Shown in pieces: positions 31,826-39,377 of a stretch of 64,000 nt of DNA. The notes under the pieces are model-generated. The model was not told where the DNA came from. It was given only the letters and a program-made list of their open reading frames with translations, and searched no databases. Position 1 is the first letter of the stretch. Each line of letters opens with the position of its first letter. A program made the position numbers and the translations under genes. This stretch comes from Trichosphaerium sp. ATCC 40318. Its lineage: Eukaryota > Protista > Tubulinea. The stretch lies in assembly GCA_038496445.1 (NCBI GenBank), contig JALMLS010000391.1:1-64000 (forward strand). Reading direction: 5' to 3'.

Positions 31826-34250
31826 ATGAAAAAAACAAAAATAAGCTCATACCGTTCAACTAGTTAGTTACAGTACGGTATTGTACACTGTAGTACTTAT
31901 TAAAATGTTAGGAGGAAAAGGTAAACAATTACAAAACAGTAACACGGTTTTTTTAGTAAAAAAGGGTTTATTTTTCACTTTAAATAACAATAAGGAGGTC
32001 GTCCTCCAACACCTTTTTTTGGATATTTTTTAGTACTCCATATCCATGTCGTACGCTTCATCTGATTCACATTCTGAATCTGAATCTTCACCTATTTTTT
32101 ATTCATTAGCTTTATTGCAATTTATTCTGAAATATTATGTGTACCATCAAAGTATCCACCCTCCCAATCAGCACATTCCATTTGTGCTTCATACTTTACT
32201 TTTTTCGCAATTCTTTTTGTATTTTTATTCGATTTCATATCCTCAAGCTGTTCTTTGCCCTTTTTAATTAATTCAACTACAGCTCCTTTATCATCCTGTA
32301 ATACATAAAGTCAGTAAATTATGTTTTATAATGTTGTGAGAAGATAATAAGAAAAAAAAAGAACATGTTTTTTAGTCAACTGTTTACAATTGAAAGAACG
32401 GCATGTTTGTACCTTATCTTTTACACGTTCTAGCAATGTAATAACGGCCTGTTTTTGCTCTATTGCTTTGTCTTTCTGTCCTTTTTCAAGCAATTCAGCA
32501 ATCAGTTTATTCTGAAAGTAGCAAGTGTTAATTACACAAAATCTTGAATAACACTCATAAGCGTACCAGCATTGCAGCTTCTTTGATTGCAACAGCTACC
32601 AATACTTCGCCATCCATATCTGTAAGTTTTTTTCGGTCCGTTGATGGTGTAAGTTGAAGGTGACCAGTCACAGTTTTAGTTGTATATTGTTGTTCCTATT
32701 AACAGACCTGTGAGCATGGCGACTTTTTACAAAAGAAAATGTTGACTATTGGCGTTATGTGTACCTTTCCTGATGCTAGTACTTCGTACGATAGCTTCCA
32801 AGATATCACCATAAACGACTCTTCACCTTTAGGACATTCAGTCTCACATTCTACAAGAATACGTGTTGTATCATTCGCCATTAAATCACCAAGTTGAATA
32901 GCTGGAATCATACAAAGTAAGTAAAAGTCAATGATGAACACGTGAAGATTGTCACGTGATGTGAGTTAGAAAAGCCGTACCTGATGGTTTATCGTCTTTT
33001 CCCCATACTTTAGTTATTTGAGTTCCTTTGGCAGCTGTGAGGTTCAACACAGCGCTGATACCTTTAAGCTCAAGTAATCCATGAATTGCTTTCGAAATTC
33101 CTTGTTGGATAGATATTGGTGAGCTTAAGAACATGTAGTGACCGCCACCGTGTGCAGCAATAGCCTATGACATTTTAGCTCGGGAATTATAAACTAGGTA
33201 CACATTACCATCATCATTTTCTCATCAAAATCGCTTCCAATACCAAACGCAGAAGTCTTCAAAAATAATTAGAAAAAAAAACATTTGAAGCAAAAAAGCC
33301 TTACTGTGACGCCTTGGTCTGCCATCTTTACAACTATTTCAGATACCTTATCTATACTTTTAATACCTTCATTTGCAAGGCCATCAGAAAACAAGAAAAT
33401 ACGCTTAATGGCTCCATTTTTGGTCTTGTGTTTTTGAAGTAAATCAAATCCACGTTGTAGCTATTTTAAAAAAACGTTAGCGCTTGACTTCTTTCACGTG
33501 ATTCCGAAAAAAAGAACGTACTCCTCCAGAGAGGTTAGTACAGCCTTCTGTTTGTATATCTTTCACATCTTGTTTGAGGTATTCTTTGTCTGATAAATCA
33601 TCATCTGTACAAAAAAATTAAGTAAGTTTCGCAACCTATTTTTATCTTACGTTCAACGATTGTTGTTACTTTAGATCCATAGGCGACAATTGTCAATTTA
33701 TCCTGTGTAACGCTGTTAGTGATATAGTATAGATGCGCTTGAGGCATACTTTACCGGGTTCCAGATGTTTTATCACTTTTTTCAACGCTTTCTTTGCGAA
33801 ATGTAGTTTACTACCGTCCATTGATCCAGAACGATCCAAAACAACCGCCAGTTCCTTTGGCAAGTCAGTTTCAGACACCAATTCGGTCTACGTTATATTT
33901 TAAACCGTACAATGGGCGCTCTGACTGCTGAGTTCTCGTTTTTTGACGTAATAACCTTCAAAGCGCAGTTCCATGTTGAGGTACGTTTTGCTTTTATAAA
34001 CGCGCATGCAGGTGCCGCAACGACACTGACGGGTTCTGTTGGGGTTGCAGGATTGTTAGGAGTTGCTGCCATGATGTATAGTATGAGATTTTAATGGTTT
34101 TGAGTTCGCGAACCAAAACCAACAACCAACTATTTTTCAATGAACGTAAAAAAAGTAAAATTATTAGCTAAACAATGCCATAACAAGAAAACGCTAAGTC
34201 ATTGGTAAGCTTATAATGCACTCAACTTTTACATTCAATGACTACATGTA
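31826..34250. repeat. Direct duplication copy 1 (partner ~47388-49760)
   Basis: Exons are near-identical and introns diverged; boundaries are approximate. Confidence 0.92.
32030..34072 (-). CDS. von Willebrand factor A domain protein, copy 1
   Basis: RAPI|ELAVVLDRSGSM (MIDAS), TNLSGG, IFLFSDGLANEG, SAFGIGSDFDE, and an acidic tail ending DMDMEY. Confidence 0.88.
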
Positions 34251-34622
34251 ACATGTAGTCTTTCTTCAGCTTGTGGATCATGATGCATTGATATTCTTAC
34301 AGCCACTTCATCTTATGCAATCAATGCAAGTGTTTTTCATTTTGCTGTATGTCTGACACTTGACATCCAAATATTGTTGTATCCTACAACATGATGTATA
34401 ACATCAGCAATAGTAATGTCTACTAACCGATTAAACTTGTTTTTGATAGTCACGTGCGCTAGGATTTTTCAAGAAAAGTCAGTGTTGAGCACCAACTTCA
34501 AAGGCGTTCCGTTGACCAAAATCTCATACGGTTTTAACCACGTCACTTCGAAATCACTGAATCTCTCTTAGTAGTCCACAGTATGTTGTCATAGCCGCAA
34601 TTGAAGTTTGTAATTAGCCACA

Positions 34623-37106
34623 ATGGACATTCTAGAATACTTTATTGCAACATTCGCCCTCCTCTTATTCGCGTGGCTTGTGCTTGCTCTAACGTATTGC
34701 TGCAGACGTACAAAACCCTTTCACGGTTATAAAGTAGGCGCTCCTATATCTGTAGGGATAGGTACTATCCCTCTTGATTTGATTTCACTACTGAAAAACT
34801 TAGACCTTGGAACAACTCAGTGTTGTGCGTCGTTTTGGTCTAAGAAGAATAATTGGATAAAGACAATACCGTTAGACAATGGTAACAAGTTAATGCCTTC
34901 AGTTGTTTATCTTGATCCAGACACAGGCTCGTTTGAAGTGTGATATAAGTCCTACACCCAAAATTATGAGTAACTTCACAGTAGGTTGGCAAGAGTGCTT
35001 TGAAAAAGCAAAGATCTCTACCCAGAAGCGTTGTGAGTAACGCAAAAAGGTTAATAGGCCGGGAATATTCTTCAGCAGAGTGTGAAATGGTAAGGAGACA
35101 AAAAAGTTGTTAGGATTTTTTGTAACTAGTCTTTCTTAGGTTAGAAGAAATGCAAGCTATTCTATTATCAAGGGTGTAGAAGATAAACCTGAAATCAGTG
35201 TACATCTAGTTGCTTATCTTTTTCTTCTGACACGTGATTATAGTTACCGTACAAAGGCGGATATAAAACATTTTTGCCAAAAAAGATAAGTAGCGTGCTG
35301 TTAGCAGGCATTAAACGATCGATAGGTATCACCCCATTCTTTGCCTCGGATATAACCTAGTAATGTTCATTTATTTAGAGACCTACCTTGGTAGACCTAT
35401 TGACTCTGCAGGTACACTGCTAAAAAGCTAAGATATTCTAACAACAATCTATAGTTATAACTGTTCCTGCTCATTTCGGTGAGGTGAGTGGTACTATTGT
35501 AAACAACAGATTCATCATTGAGTAAGGTCCAACGACGAGCAACAAAAGAAGCTGCTTCTATGGCTGGACTTAGCGTTGCAAGAATAATAGCTGAGTACGT
35601 TTTCAAGCATTTTTGTTTGTTGTTGAGCGTTTGATGCAGGCCTACAGCTGCAGCGATAGCGTACGGATTTACTTTTGCTGGAGTAAGAACGATATTGGTT
35701 TTTGATTGGGGAGGAGGAACGCTTGATGTTTCATTACTAAAGTTAGATAACGGAGAATGTCGTGTTGTTGCAACTGCTGGGAAATCACATCTTGGTGGAG
35801 CAGATATAGATATCAATGTACGTTGCAATATATCTTAGTATACACGTAATCTCAGATAATTATGAATACGATTAGGTACTTCACTTTGTTATTGATAAGA
35901 TATCTACAGACTGTGGTGTAAATATCAGAAAATACCCGGAAATCATGGTAGAAGTACGGACATTCATGTTCACAATAGTTCTGACCATCAAGGTAACGAG
36001 GAGTTGCGAACAAGCCAAAGTGACACTGTCAAAGGAAGACACTGCTCTCATTTCTGTAACAAACATACCTAACATTGGCACACATCAGATTACATTAACA
36101 AGGTGAGTTATACGATCCTATGATTGACTTTGAATTAAATTGCTTTAGAGATCTTTTTAATACTTTAAACGAGGATATCTGGAGCCAAGCAATGGAACCT
36201 GTACAAAAAACGTGAGCTATAAAATTAGTACTGATATCGCCACAAGATAGGTGAAGCTCTCAATTCTTCAGGTGTTGTTGAAAGCGAAGTTACAGAGGTT
36301 GTACTCGTAGGAGGATCATCGAGAATTCCAAAAATAAGGGAGCTTCTCACGTCCCGTTTTGGAAAGGTGGTTGATATTCAATTTAATCACCTGTTTGATT
36401 TATTTCAACCTTAGGAACTATGTACAGTTGTTGATGCAGATAAAGGCGTTGCTTGGGGTGCTGGTATTCAAGCAGCAATGCTATCTGGTGTCAGTAGTGA
36501 ATTACTTTGTGATTTTTTACTGTTTGATATCACTGCTTCTGATATTGGTATTCTTAACTCTAACAACGAGATGGTATGTATGGCTCTATCCCTTGTCTAA
36601 ATACACCTAATACAATATTGGGTTAGGTCACTCTGATTCCGCGTAACACCCAACTGCCAGCACGAGGAGAAAAGGTGTTTTCAACATACGAAGATGACCA
36701 AAAATATGTTACAGTTAAAGTGTATGAAGGAAACAACAAAACAGCTCTGTGAGTCTTTTCCTTTTACCTCTATCTATGTTTTTGCGTTTACTATATTAAC
36801 AGAGAAAACGGGTATATTGGACACTGGACGCTACCAATTGCAGATGCTAAAGGAGCAAAGAAAGGCGAAAGAAAAGTGAAAATTGTTATCGAACTTGATA
36901 TAAATGGACTACTTCGTGTAAGTCATGAAACACTTGGTGTACCACCTAGATTTATGTCAACTATTGCTTGGATATCGTTTGGTATTTACATAGCAGGTAA
37001 GAGTTAGACCAGTCACAACAATAGTCACAAAGTACTTTTCATAGGAGTAATATGCTCAGTCTGCTACTGGGGTTTTTTGCAATTCCAGAAGAACCCAGGT
37101 GGATAG
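34623..37106 (+). CDS. Atypical Hsp70 with N- and C-terminal hydrophobic segments and no lid domain
   Basis: [68 protein letters not shown] and VYEG; ends [11 protein letters not shown] + TM segment. Confidence 0.88.
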
Positions 37107-37307
37107 AAGCTAGCTCGGATACGTGAACCCCCTTAAAATTATGCGAAAATTACAGAAGCATATCACGCTGTTCTTCAACAAGAAACATTAAAATAAAGAA
37201 ACAAAGTCGAATTCAAAAGTGTATTTTATGAAGTATTGCAAAGAATATTTTTCACAAAAACAGTTTTGTTGTTATATCTCATGTAGTTTTTCTTTAATGA
37301 GTTTCTC

Positions 37308-39377
37308 TTATTCAGATTTTTTAAGACTGAATATTGCAGAAATAGCTTTTGCAAGCCTCATAATATGATCATCGTCGTTATAAACATGACAAGAAACCCT
37401 AACACACTGCCTCATTTTTTCTCCAACATGTGTTTTGCTTACTGGTACTTCTATGTTATATTTGTCACGTAGAGTATCGTGAATATCAATATCTACTTTA
37501 TCATCTTCTGGAAGAAGAACAAGAGCCATAGCACCGCATAATGTTTTATCAACAAGAACTTCTGTGTTCCAATACTAGTGTTAAAAAAAAATCCAAGTCA
37601 GCCTCAATGAACACGTGGTATAATACTGAAAACTCAACAGTAGGAATAATACTTTCACTAGTTCGTTATTTTGTTGTAAAATAGAAAAACAATAGAGAAA
37701 GGGGCCTTTGAAAAGGCAAAACGTTAAAGTTTTGTTGATAAAAAAGTAATAACTTTGCTTACGTCTGAAAGAAAGTTTCCTTTTTGCACTGCCATGTCAT
37801 GATTTCTATTAAAAACAGACTTGATATCACCACCACCAATCCATTGCATATATTTATGAGCCAAACGCATTGTAATCATTGGTGTATAGTCCTTAAAATG
37901 ATATTAAAAAAAAGCAATCTTAATAATTTTGTTGTTGTGAAGCAACGATACTAAATGTAGATGTTGGTGCAACTTCCAAGAAAAAAAAGAATTGAATATT
38001 AAAACGTCATCCACAAGTGGAACAAAGTAAGAAAGTATTTCATGTAAGAATGACGGAAATCCTTACCATTGTGCCTTGCCTAAAAAAAATAAGTTAAAAT
38101 CCATGCAATGATTACTATTTAAAAGTTTACCATATAAACTCAGCATGAAACCCTTTATCAGAACCCCATGTTGTTACAACAGGATGAACAGTCATCTGTA
38201 ACTTTGGATTCACATACAACAATGCAGCTCCACGATTATTACACTAGTAAGACAAAGAAATCAAAAAGATGGAAAAAAAAAACTTGCAAACAAAAAACGA
38301 TTAATGACACGTGTCATTTTTCCACTAGTTGCTTACCAACCACTTGTGCCCATTTGTAACATAATAGTCTGCATTAATCTCATCCAAAGAAAGAGGTATT
38401 TGACCAAGAGAATGTGCTCCATCAATTAGCACTTTAGCATTGTATTTATGACATAAAGACACTATCCTTGACACAGGCATGATGACAGCTGTTGGGCTTA
38501 TAATATGAGATACAACGACAAGATCAACTTTCGATTTCTTCAAGCAGGCTTCAAGTTGCGCTATTACTTTATCACCATAATTACTACCAGCAGGAAGAGG
38601 TGGAAGAGTAAGCTCTGTAACTTTTCCTTTACAAGCTGTTTTTGCAGCTGTTTTTACAGCCCCGTATGTGAGATTAAACACAACGACATGGCTCTCTGGT
38701 GTCCACGGGAAAGAGGAAAGAACAGCAGCAATACCATACTCCTATGTAGAAGGTTCTTTAGGGACAAGCGACACTTTTTTGAAAGGTAGAATAAAAAGAC
38801 GTACAACGTTAGGAATGAAGCCCATGTGTTCTGGTTTTGACCCAACGGCGTTTGCCATGTAGCGTAGGCTTTTTACAAGTTGTGAGAACAACGTCTAAAT
38901 AACAACAAGTTAACTAGCTAAATTTCTAACAAATACGCTACCACGAACTCGTTTAGAGCGTATTTCGTACATTGTAAAAGAAATATACTGGCTGTTTCTC
39001 TATTTCGAAATGCCAAGCGTGACAAGCGTCTAAAATGTCTTTTGGAGTAGCTCCTATAATAAACACGCCAAATGAGCAACAAATAACAAAAAACCGTTGT
39101 ACCATAACTGCCGTGTGCCAAAAACGCTATTTTATCATCTAATAAGAACTCCTACAAGTATTAACGTCCAAAAACGCTTGCTAACGTGCTTTCATCGCTT
39201 CTTTACCAAAAGCTGGCGGTTTACTTTCAGAAAGCTTCTGTAATAATTTAACTTCGAAATCTGGAGCGTCTGGCGCCTGAAAAACGCGTTAGTAACATTG
39301 TAGTAATAAACTTATTGTACCTCATATTCTGTGTCTGTCAAACGCATTTGAGCCTCTACTTTTTCGTATTTCGACAT
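37308..39377 (-). CDS. PLP-dependent class V aminotransferase (Egt2/L-cysteine desulfhydrase/isopenicillin N epimerase-like)
   Basis: FLAHGSYG, YGAVK, SHIISPTA, IDGAHSLGQ, NGHKWL and VRVSCHVYN. Confidence 0.88.

Follow-up and report, generated by a model that had tools for sequence, protein, structure and literature searches.

To our knowledge, every textbook Hsp70 is a soluble protein which is brought to membranes by adaptors. In systems such as Sec63-BiP, Tim44-mtHsp70 or the membrane J-proteins (DNAJB12), a separate membrane protein recruits the soluble chaperone. BiP (HSPA5, Kar2), an Hsp70 of the eukaryotic type, bears a hydrophobic targeting segment at its N-terminus; it is soluble in the lumen, possesses a lid and terminates with KDEL or HDEL. 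Engineered lidless DnaK and Hsp70 constructs, comprising approximately residues 1-507, keep allostery and release their clients faster. A hydrophobic leader at the N-terminus is also carried by HSPA13 (STCH). This atypical, C-terminally truncated and ER-membrane-associated Hsp70 is eumetazoan and lacks the substrate-binding domain (PMC9691929).

Here, we present the computational analysis of an Hsp70 gene in a 64-kb stretch of DNA, which is termed the window in the following. The encoded protein shows about 38% identity to cytosolic Hsp70/Hsc70 proteins (HSPA8, HSPA1A, Ssa) and has the same ATPase motifs, linker and beta domain. In contrast to these canonical Hsp70s, it lacks the alpha-helical lid, the disordered tail and the EEVD ending, and it carries a hydrophobic helix at each end. 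Furthermore, it contains a two-residue insertion, the sequence KGAKKGER in place of PPAPRGVP, and IIAEP instead of IINEP. HSPA13, likewise atypical and C-terminally truncated, is the nearest named oddity, from whose description the window protein is set apart by a full beta domain and an added C-terminal helix. The soluble core equals the lidless laboratory constructs in domain content, whereas its truncation occurs in nature, is conserved and precedes a predicted membrane helix. A functional analogy to the adaptor systems is possible, as these also place Hsp70 activity at a membrane, but the window Hsp70 would bear its own anchors. With tail-anchored proteins it shares a single hydrophobic helix followed by a short C-terminal remainder; unlike the strict tail-anchored class, the window protein and its environmental relative P0003 also have an N-terminal hydrophobic helix.

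A literature search of partial coverage found no description of an integral-membrane, tail-anchored, membrane-anchored or lidless natural Hsp70. An initial annotation of the window had named no described equivalent, and this holds in so far as literature and database searches found none that has been described; the protein is, however, not unique and has relatives in environmental sequence.

Gene structure, transcription and domain content

The gene model was built from three-frame translation and motif-guided splicing (Table 1). All introns are of the GT-AG type with lengths of 39-58 nt and, together with a G+C content of about 37%, they identify the window DNA as eukaryotic. An in-frame stop is located just 5′ of the ATG at 34623, which is the earliest in-frame ATG past this stop, and a start at the next one would remove the beginning of the ATPase domain.

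Table 1. Positions of the Hsp70 gene, its exons and the features of the encoded protein within the window
Feature	Position	Strand	Basis or remark
Coding region, whole	34623..37106	+	17 exons, 574 codons + stop; manual splice model
Exons 1-4	34623-34761, 34804-34937, 34985-35089, 35140-35199	+	
Exons 5-8	35244-35325, 35379-35411, 35455-35483, 35527-35594	+	
Exons 9-12	35640-35817, 35876-35953, 35993-36102, 36149-36200	+	
Exons 13-17	36247-36366, 36415-36573, 36627-36748, 36803-36996, 37045-37106	+	
N-terminal hydrophobic helix, aa 6-27, 22 residues	34638..34703	+	Hydropathy; RNA over 3′ half
Basic juxtamembrane stretch, aa 28-37	34704..34733	+	Charge count
Nucleotide-binding (ATPase) domain, aa 43-428, introns within	34749..36510	+	Pfam HSP70 profile 6-400
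Hydrophobic interdomain linker DFLLFDI, aa 429-435	36511..36531	+	Alignment
Beta substrate-binding domain, aa 436-530, introns within	36532..36923	+	Pfam profile 400-485, alignment
Family-specific KGAKKGER in beta domain	36849-36872	+	Alignment
Nine-residue tether HETLGVPPR	36924..36950	+	Alignment with relatives
C-terminal hydrophobic helix, part 1, aa 540-555	36951..36996	+	Kyte-Doolittle 1.95; RNA junction
C-terminal hydrophobic helix, part 2, to aa 566	37045..37079	+	Hydropathy, RNA contig
Eight-residue tail QFQKNPGG + stop	37080..37106	+	RNA contig continues to 37179
Stop codon	37104-37106	+	Inside RNA contig
ATTAAA, candidate polyadenylation signal	37187..37192	+	Putative, from sequence

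Transcription of the gene is documented by X1, the sole public run that contains this DNA, whose contigs skip introns and which thus behaves like RNA. Spliced contigs back 7 of the 16 junctions (introns 1, 10, 11, 12, 13, 15 and 16): introns 1, 11, 12, 13, 15 and 16 are skipped exactly, all with GT..AG ends, and the donor of intron 10 was set at 35953/35954 by a loose contig end. A single contig joins exons 15, 16 and 17, passes the stop codon and reaches position 37179 in the 3′ UTR, so that the mRNA contains the C-terminal helix and the protein end as modelled; the junction 36996/37045, by which the helix is split, is present in an RNA contig. From position 34675 onwards, another contig covers the first helix in its 3′ half and continues into exon 2. 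The RNA depth is 4-6 in this one run, with no cover over exons 3-9 and the initial 52 nt of exon 1. The first and the last intron, the stop codon and the 3′ UTR are thus confirmed at the transcript level, and all peptides quoted in the initial annotation occur in one spliced frame.

Several alternative splice sites were considered. The sequence GTAAGT following ...LLR was ruled out as a donor because an RNA contig reads across it, and RNA contigs likewise ruled out the naive donors of exons 10 and 12, the ends of which are 35953 and 36200. Intron 10 (35954-35992, 39 nt) is in frame and stop-free and would add 13 residues if retained; it is removed in an RNA contig. For exon 4, in a region without RNA cover, the end at 35199 was chosen from intron length and alignment.

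The gene is flanked on both sides by genes on the minus strand. A gene for a vWA-domain protein (32300-34072) is divergent, with the two start codons about 550 nt apart (34072 and 34623). On the other side, a convergent gene for a class-V aminotransferase extends over 37308-38681 (Pfam Aminotran_5, E 1e-13 for one exon), and the two coding ends are separated by approximately 200 nt. This convergent neighbour, beginning at 37308, leaves no space for lid exons downstream. The sequence CACGTG occurs 48 times in the 64 kb compared with about 7 copies expected from base composition; one copy is located at 34451 in the shared upstream region of the vWA and Hsp70 genes and another at 35231 in intron 4 of the Hsp70 gene.

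The Pfam HSP70 profile (PF00012), run exon by exon, matches colinearly over the exons from profile position 6 to 485 of 599, the best exon scoring 66.6 bits. Beyond position 485, the lid part of the profile is unmatched in any exon. Alignment with cytosolic and ER Hsp70s revealed the phosphate-1 (DLGTT), phosphate-2 (DxGGGTxD) and adenosine (GGxxRIP) motifs, the latter in the form LVGGSSRIP. The same alignment shows that the residues which are catalytic in Hsp70 (Asp, Lys, Glu, Asp and Thr) have their counterparts here; we take this set to correspond to D10, K71, E175, D199 and T204 of human Hsp70. The linker aligns with DVLLIDV and DLLLLDV and resembles the canonical pattern D(V/L)LL(L/I)DV. 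The beta substrate-binding domain appears complete, with Pfam positions 400-485 matched over exons 14-16 and an alignment continuing through ...INGLLRVS. Judged by its ATPase motifs, catalytic residues, linker and beta domain, the window protein is an Hsp70.

In detail, the protein of 574 aa starts with MDILE, which is followed by the first hydrophobic stretch of 22 residues. The ATPase domain opens with GIDLGTT, and the beta domain ends in ...INGLLRVS. A second hydrophobic stretch of 27 residues (aa 540-566), cut by the last intron, precedes the end of the chain at ...KNPGG, 44 residues past the beta domain. The soluble part contains eight cysteines, and sequons are found at N130, N362 and N486. 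The endings EEVD, KDEL and HDEL are absent from the window protein; the earlier statement that helical lid, EEVD and KDEL are lacking thus agrees with the end of the Pfam match at 485/599 and with the terminal ...KNPGG. The initial annotation also had the beta domain run directly into the C-terminal helix. The helix is indeed located there, but the nine residues HETLGVPPR intervene between ...LLRVS and FMSTIAW.

Environmental relatives and phylogenetic placement

Exon 16, which spans the last part of the beta domain, the tether and one half of the C-terminal helix, served as query in an exhaustive HMMER search of 1.84 billion representatives. Four proteins passed the threshold of E 0.001, three of which are real relatives (P0002, P0003 and the P0004 cluster). 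The top match, P0001, is a tandem-repeat protein and was rejected as false. There was no self match, and hence the spliced window protein is absent from the protein collections searched. The relatives originate from ENA, JGI and Logan assemblies and are unnamed environmental eukaryotic proteins: P0003 comprises 800 aa and is encoded next to ISWI/SNF2 genes on a eukaryotic contig of 169 kb, P0002 comes from a Logan assembly and is fragmentary, and nine sequences from several metagenomes make up the P0004 cluster. The ISWI neighbour of P0003 shows about 66% identity to its counterparts in plants, animals, fungi and protists equally, and it points to no particular taxon. A conserved gene neighbourhood is absent, with the vWA gene upstream in the window and ISWI/SNF2 upstream of P0003.

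All three relatives share the motifs K-G/S-x-K-x-GER, D/N-G-x-L-R/K-V and DT-x-x-V/L-P, and the tether HETLGVPPR is conserved among them as DT(L/I)xVP(P/T). Directly after the beta domain, each of them continues with a hydrophobic stretch of about 25 residues, the sequence of which is not conserved. Hydrophobicity that is kept while the sequence drifts is a pattern typical of membrane anchors. The number of residues following this helix is 8 in the window protein and ranges from 0 to approximately 48 in the relatives. The upper value stems from P0002 (L003 609-1406), which as called reads through an in-frame intron within the beta domain; its putative tail of 48 residues, ending in ...GTDEL, may be unspliced sequence.

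P0003 is the one unambiguously full-length relative. Its N-terminus resembles that of the window protein in that a hydrophobic helix is followed by the basic cluster RRSFLFHRKGEKAP and then by IGIDLGTS, and the charge asymmetry around the helix is the same. The nearest solved structures are Hsc70 and Hsp70-1A, with matches that stop near chain residue 489. For the P0004 lineage, a 7-exon model of 583 aa was built from contig L005. The most plausible N-terminus of this model reads MWPWSRRKEEKPAKAP-AIGIDLGTT, starts at MWPWSRRK and lacks a hydrophobic helix; the RR...KAP pattern ahead of IGIDLGT occurs in the window protein, P0003 and this model alike. Some family members may thus lack the double anchor, unless the 5′ exon of L005 is incomplete. 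About 300 nt upstream of the apparent start, a stop-free hydrophobic piece in the same frame (L005 483-581, Kyte-Doolittle about 2.0) might be a missed first-helix exon or merely a T-rich stretch; a frame-keeping GT-AG join for this piece was sought and none was found. Between close variants of the L005 lineage, pN/pS is 0.10-0.14, a value based on small counts.

Further searches did not extend the family and yielded no named member. A word search with residues 330-800 of P0003 was dominated by canonical Hsp70s and gave no additional family member, one with residues 660-800 returned P0003 alone, the tail alignment, when scanned against metagenomes, recovered no more than the L005 lineage, and the ESM Atlas queried with the P0003 tail yielded generic Hsp70 fragments only. 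The family is small, conserved and rare in public data. The architecture put forward in the initial annotation, i.e. N-terminal anchor, full nucleotide-binding domain and linker, beta substrate-binding domain, C-terminal helix and no lid, is backed by RNA in the window and reappears in other eukaryotes, with the tail in all three environmental relatives and the double helix in P0003.

A phylogenetic tree was calculated with IQ-TREE (LG+C20 PMSF) from 36 rows, namely 3 family members, 11 cytosolic and 6 ER Hsp70s and 16 loci from bacterial genome records; HSPA13, HSPA14, Hsp110/Grp170 and mitochondrial Hsp70 are outside this sample. The three family members form one clade (support 100/99) on the eukaryotic side of a 100/100 split against 15 bacterial DnaKs. 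The family, the cytosolic clade (93/78) and the ER clade (97/95) form an unresolved three-way split, in which the sampled ER clade excludes the family, subject to a long-branch caveat. All three family branches are long, and the window protein scores about 355 bits against canonical Hsp70s compared with 213 bits against P0003, so that the monophyly might be overstated through long-branch attraction. The shared insertion and tail motifs independently support a common origin. That the family constitutes an old third lineage of eukaryote-type Hsp70s, next to the cytosolic and ER-lumenal lineages and integral to the membrane, is conceivable but doubtful. In this case, the ATPase domain and the lidless clamp would face the cytosol at a distance of a few residues from the bilayer, the membrane surface would replace the lid, and the protein would act as a built-in holdase or ratchet on polypeptides that move into or out of the membrane.

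The remaining locus from a bacterial genome record belongs to Endozoicomonas sp. ALC020 (NZ_CP184830.1, 3961921-3964329; L010). It encodes a BiP-like Hsp70 of the eukaryotic type with a hydrophobic leader and a C-terminal KDEL, nests within the ER clade (97/95) apart from bacterial DnaK, and was apparently acquired from a eukaryotic host.

Proposed membrane topology and competing explanations

The maxima of Kyte-Doolittle 19-mers are 2.29 for the N-terminal and 1.95 for the C-terminal helix, and the summed Hessa values amount to about -3 and about +1 kcal/mol, respectively; on this simple Hessa sum, the C-terminal helix is only moderately hydrophobic. Among approximately 115 canonical Hsp70s fetched, a C-terminus of comparable hydrophobicity is found in only two entries, which seem to be mispredicted or truncated; with 1.6, they have the highest canonical C-terminal values, versus 2.8-2.95 in the relatives. 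By hydropathy, the window protein, P0003, P0002 and P0004 have one putative transmembrane helix near the C-terminus which is tail-anchor-like. The side chains flanking the first helix carry a net charge of -2 on the N-terminal side, partly offset by the free amino terminus, and of +4 in the 15 residues past the helix.

From these features, we infer membrane insertion and orientation. A long hydrophobic core combined with the positive-inside rule points to a reverse signal anchor with the N-terminus out and the body in the cytosol. As only eight residues follow the second helix, the ribosome tunnel would still enclose it when translation terminates, which suggests a tail-anchor-like insertion and again a cytosolic body. 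The cytosol-facing, twice-pinned topology thus fits the sequence and would follow above all from the charge asymmetry. We assign a probability of roughly 60% to the reading that the window harbors an expressed gene of a small, conserved Hsp70 branch in which the lid is replaced by a tail-anchor-like helix and the chaperone faces the cytosol on a double anchor.

The main rival, which we regard as unlikely, is a lumenal type I layout, in which a cleaved signal peptide or a type II anchor would place the body in the ER lumen and the C-terminal helix would act as stop-transfer, leaving eight residues in the cytosol. Type I proteins classically combine an N-terminal hydrophobic segment with a C-terminal helix, and the tree leaves a cytosolic or an ER origin of the family undecided. 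HSPA13, moreover, is an Hsp70 of the ER (PMC9691929). However, an n-region without positive charge, a core of 22 residues and the +4 thereafter favour N-out, C-in, and the missing KDEL/HDEL, the cysteines of the soluble part and the position outside the sampled ER clade (97/95) speak against a lumenal protein as well. Less probable still is the same cytosol-facing double anchor on the outer membrane of mitochondria or another organelle, where the protein would serve as a built-in import receptor and holdase; an outer-mitochondrial location is a variant of the main reading. Signal anchors with a basic flank and tail anchors with moderately hydrophobic helices are typical of the mitochondrial outer membrane, and the second helix of the window protein is only moderately hydrophobic. 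The very hydrophobic first helix (Kyte-Doolittle 2.29, Hessa about -3) would, in contrast, usually lead to SRP/ER targeting.

Two further explanations dispense with membrane-spanning helices or with a functional gene. The terminal segments could be amphipathic anchors at a surface, or pseudo-substrates which occupy the clamp of the same molecule. Lidless Hsp70 constructs are able to capture the tail of the same chain, which gives this idea a certain basis, but it is very improbable in view of two segments of 22-27 residues with few or no charges, the second with aromatic residues at both ends, and of a hydrophobicity that is kept in four lineages despite sequence drift. A gene-model artefact or a decaying pseudogene, to which the low RNA depth might point, is largely refuted by a frame that is intact across 17 exons, by the spliced RNA, by the retained catalytic residues and by the conservation of the tail in other lineages.

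Proposed mode of action and significance

In the favoured cytosol-facing arrangement, insertion of the first helix would expose the five N-terminal residues to the lumenal or outer side and keep the basic flank in the cytosol, where the ATPase domain, the linker and the beta clamp would remain. After termination of translation, the last helix would insert and bring the final eight residues to the far side. The chaperone would thereby be held at the cytosolic side of an endomembrane, most probably one derived from the ER, with tethers of about 15 and about 9 residues. As the catalytic residues and the linker are intact, ATPase activity and an ordinary ATP-driven Hsp70 cycle are probable. Client exchange is faster in lidless DnaK, and the loss of the lid may lead to fast exchange here too. 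The clamp would act near the bilayer on unfolded or hydrophobic segments; the clients might be, speculatively, membrane or secretory proteins prior to their insertion, translocation or extraction. We hold the picture of a membrane-proximal holdase at an ER-derived membrane with moderate confidence regarding the topology and with low confidence regarding the clients. The translocation or membrane-remodelling motor suggested in the initial annotation is speculation.

As judged from its sequence features, the family looks like an apparently undescribed membrane-integral branch, which is both an architectural variant and a small subfamily of the well-studied Hsp70s. Its rarity in public data and the non-model nature of the organisms set practical limits to its study. 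If the proposed reading is true, an integral-membrane, lidless Hsp70 in several eukaryotic lineages would represent a new mode of deploying Hsp70. The family would then provide a natural experiment on the roles of the lid and of clamp geometry relative to the bilayer in client handling, as well as a defined target for studies concerning membrane-protein biogenesis and quality control in little-studied protists.
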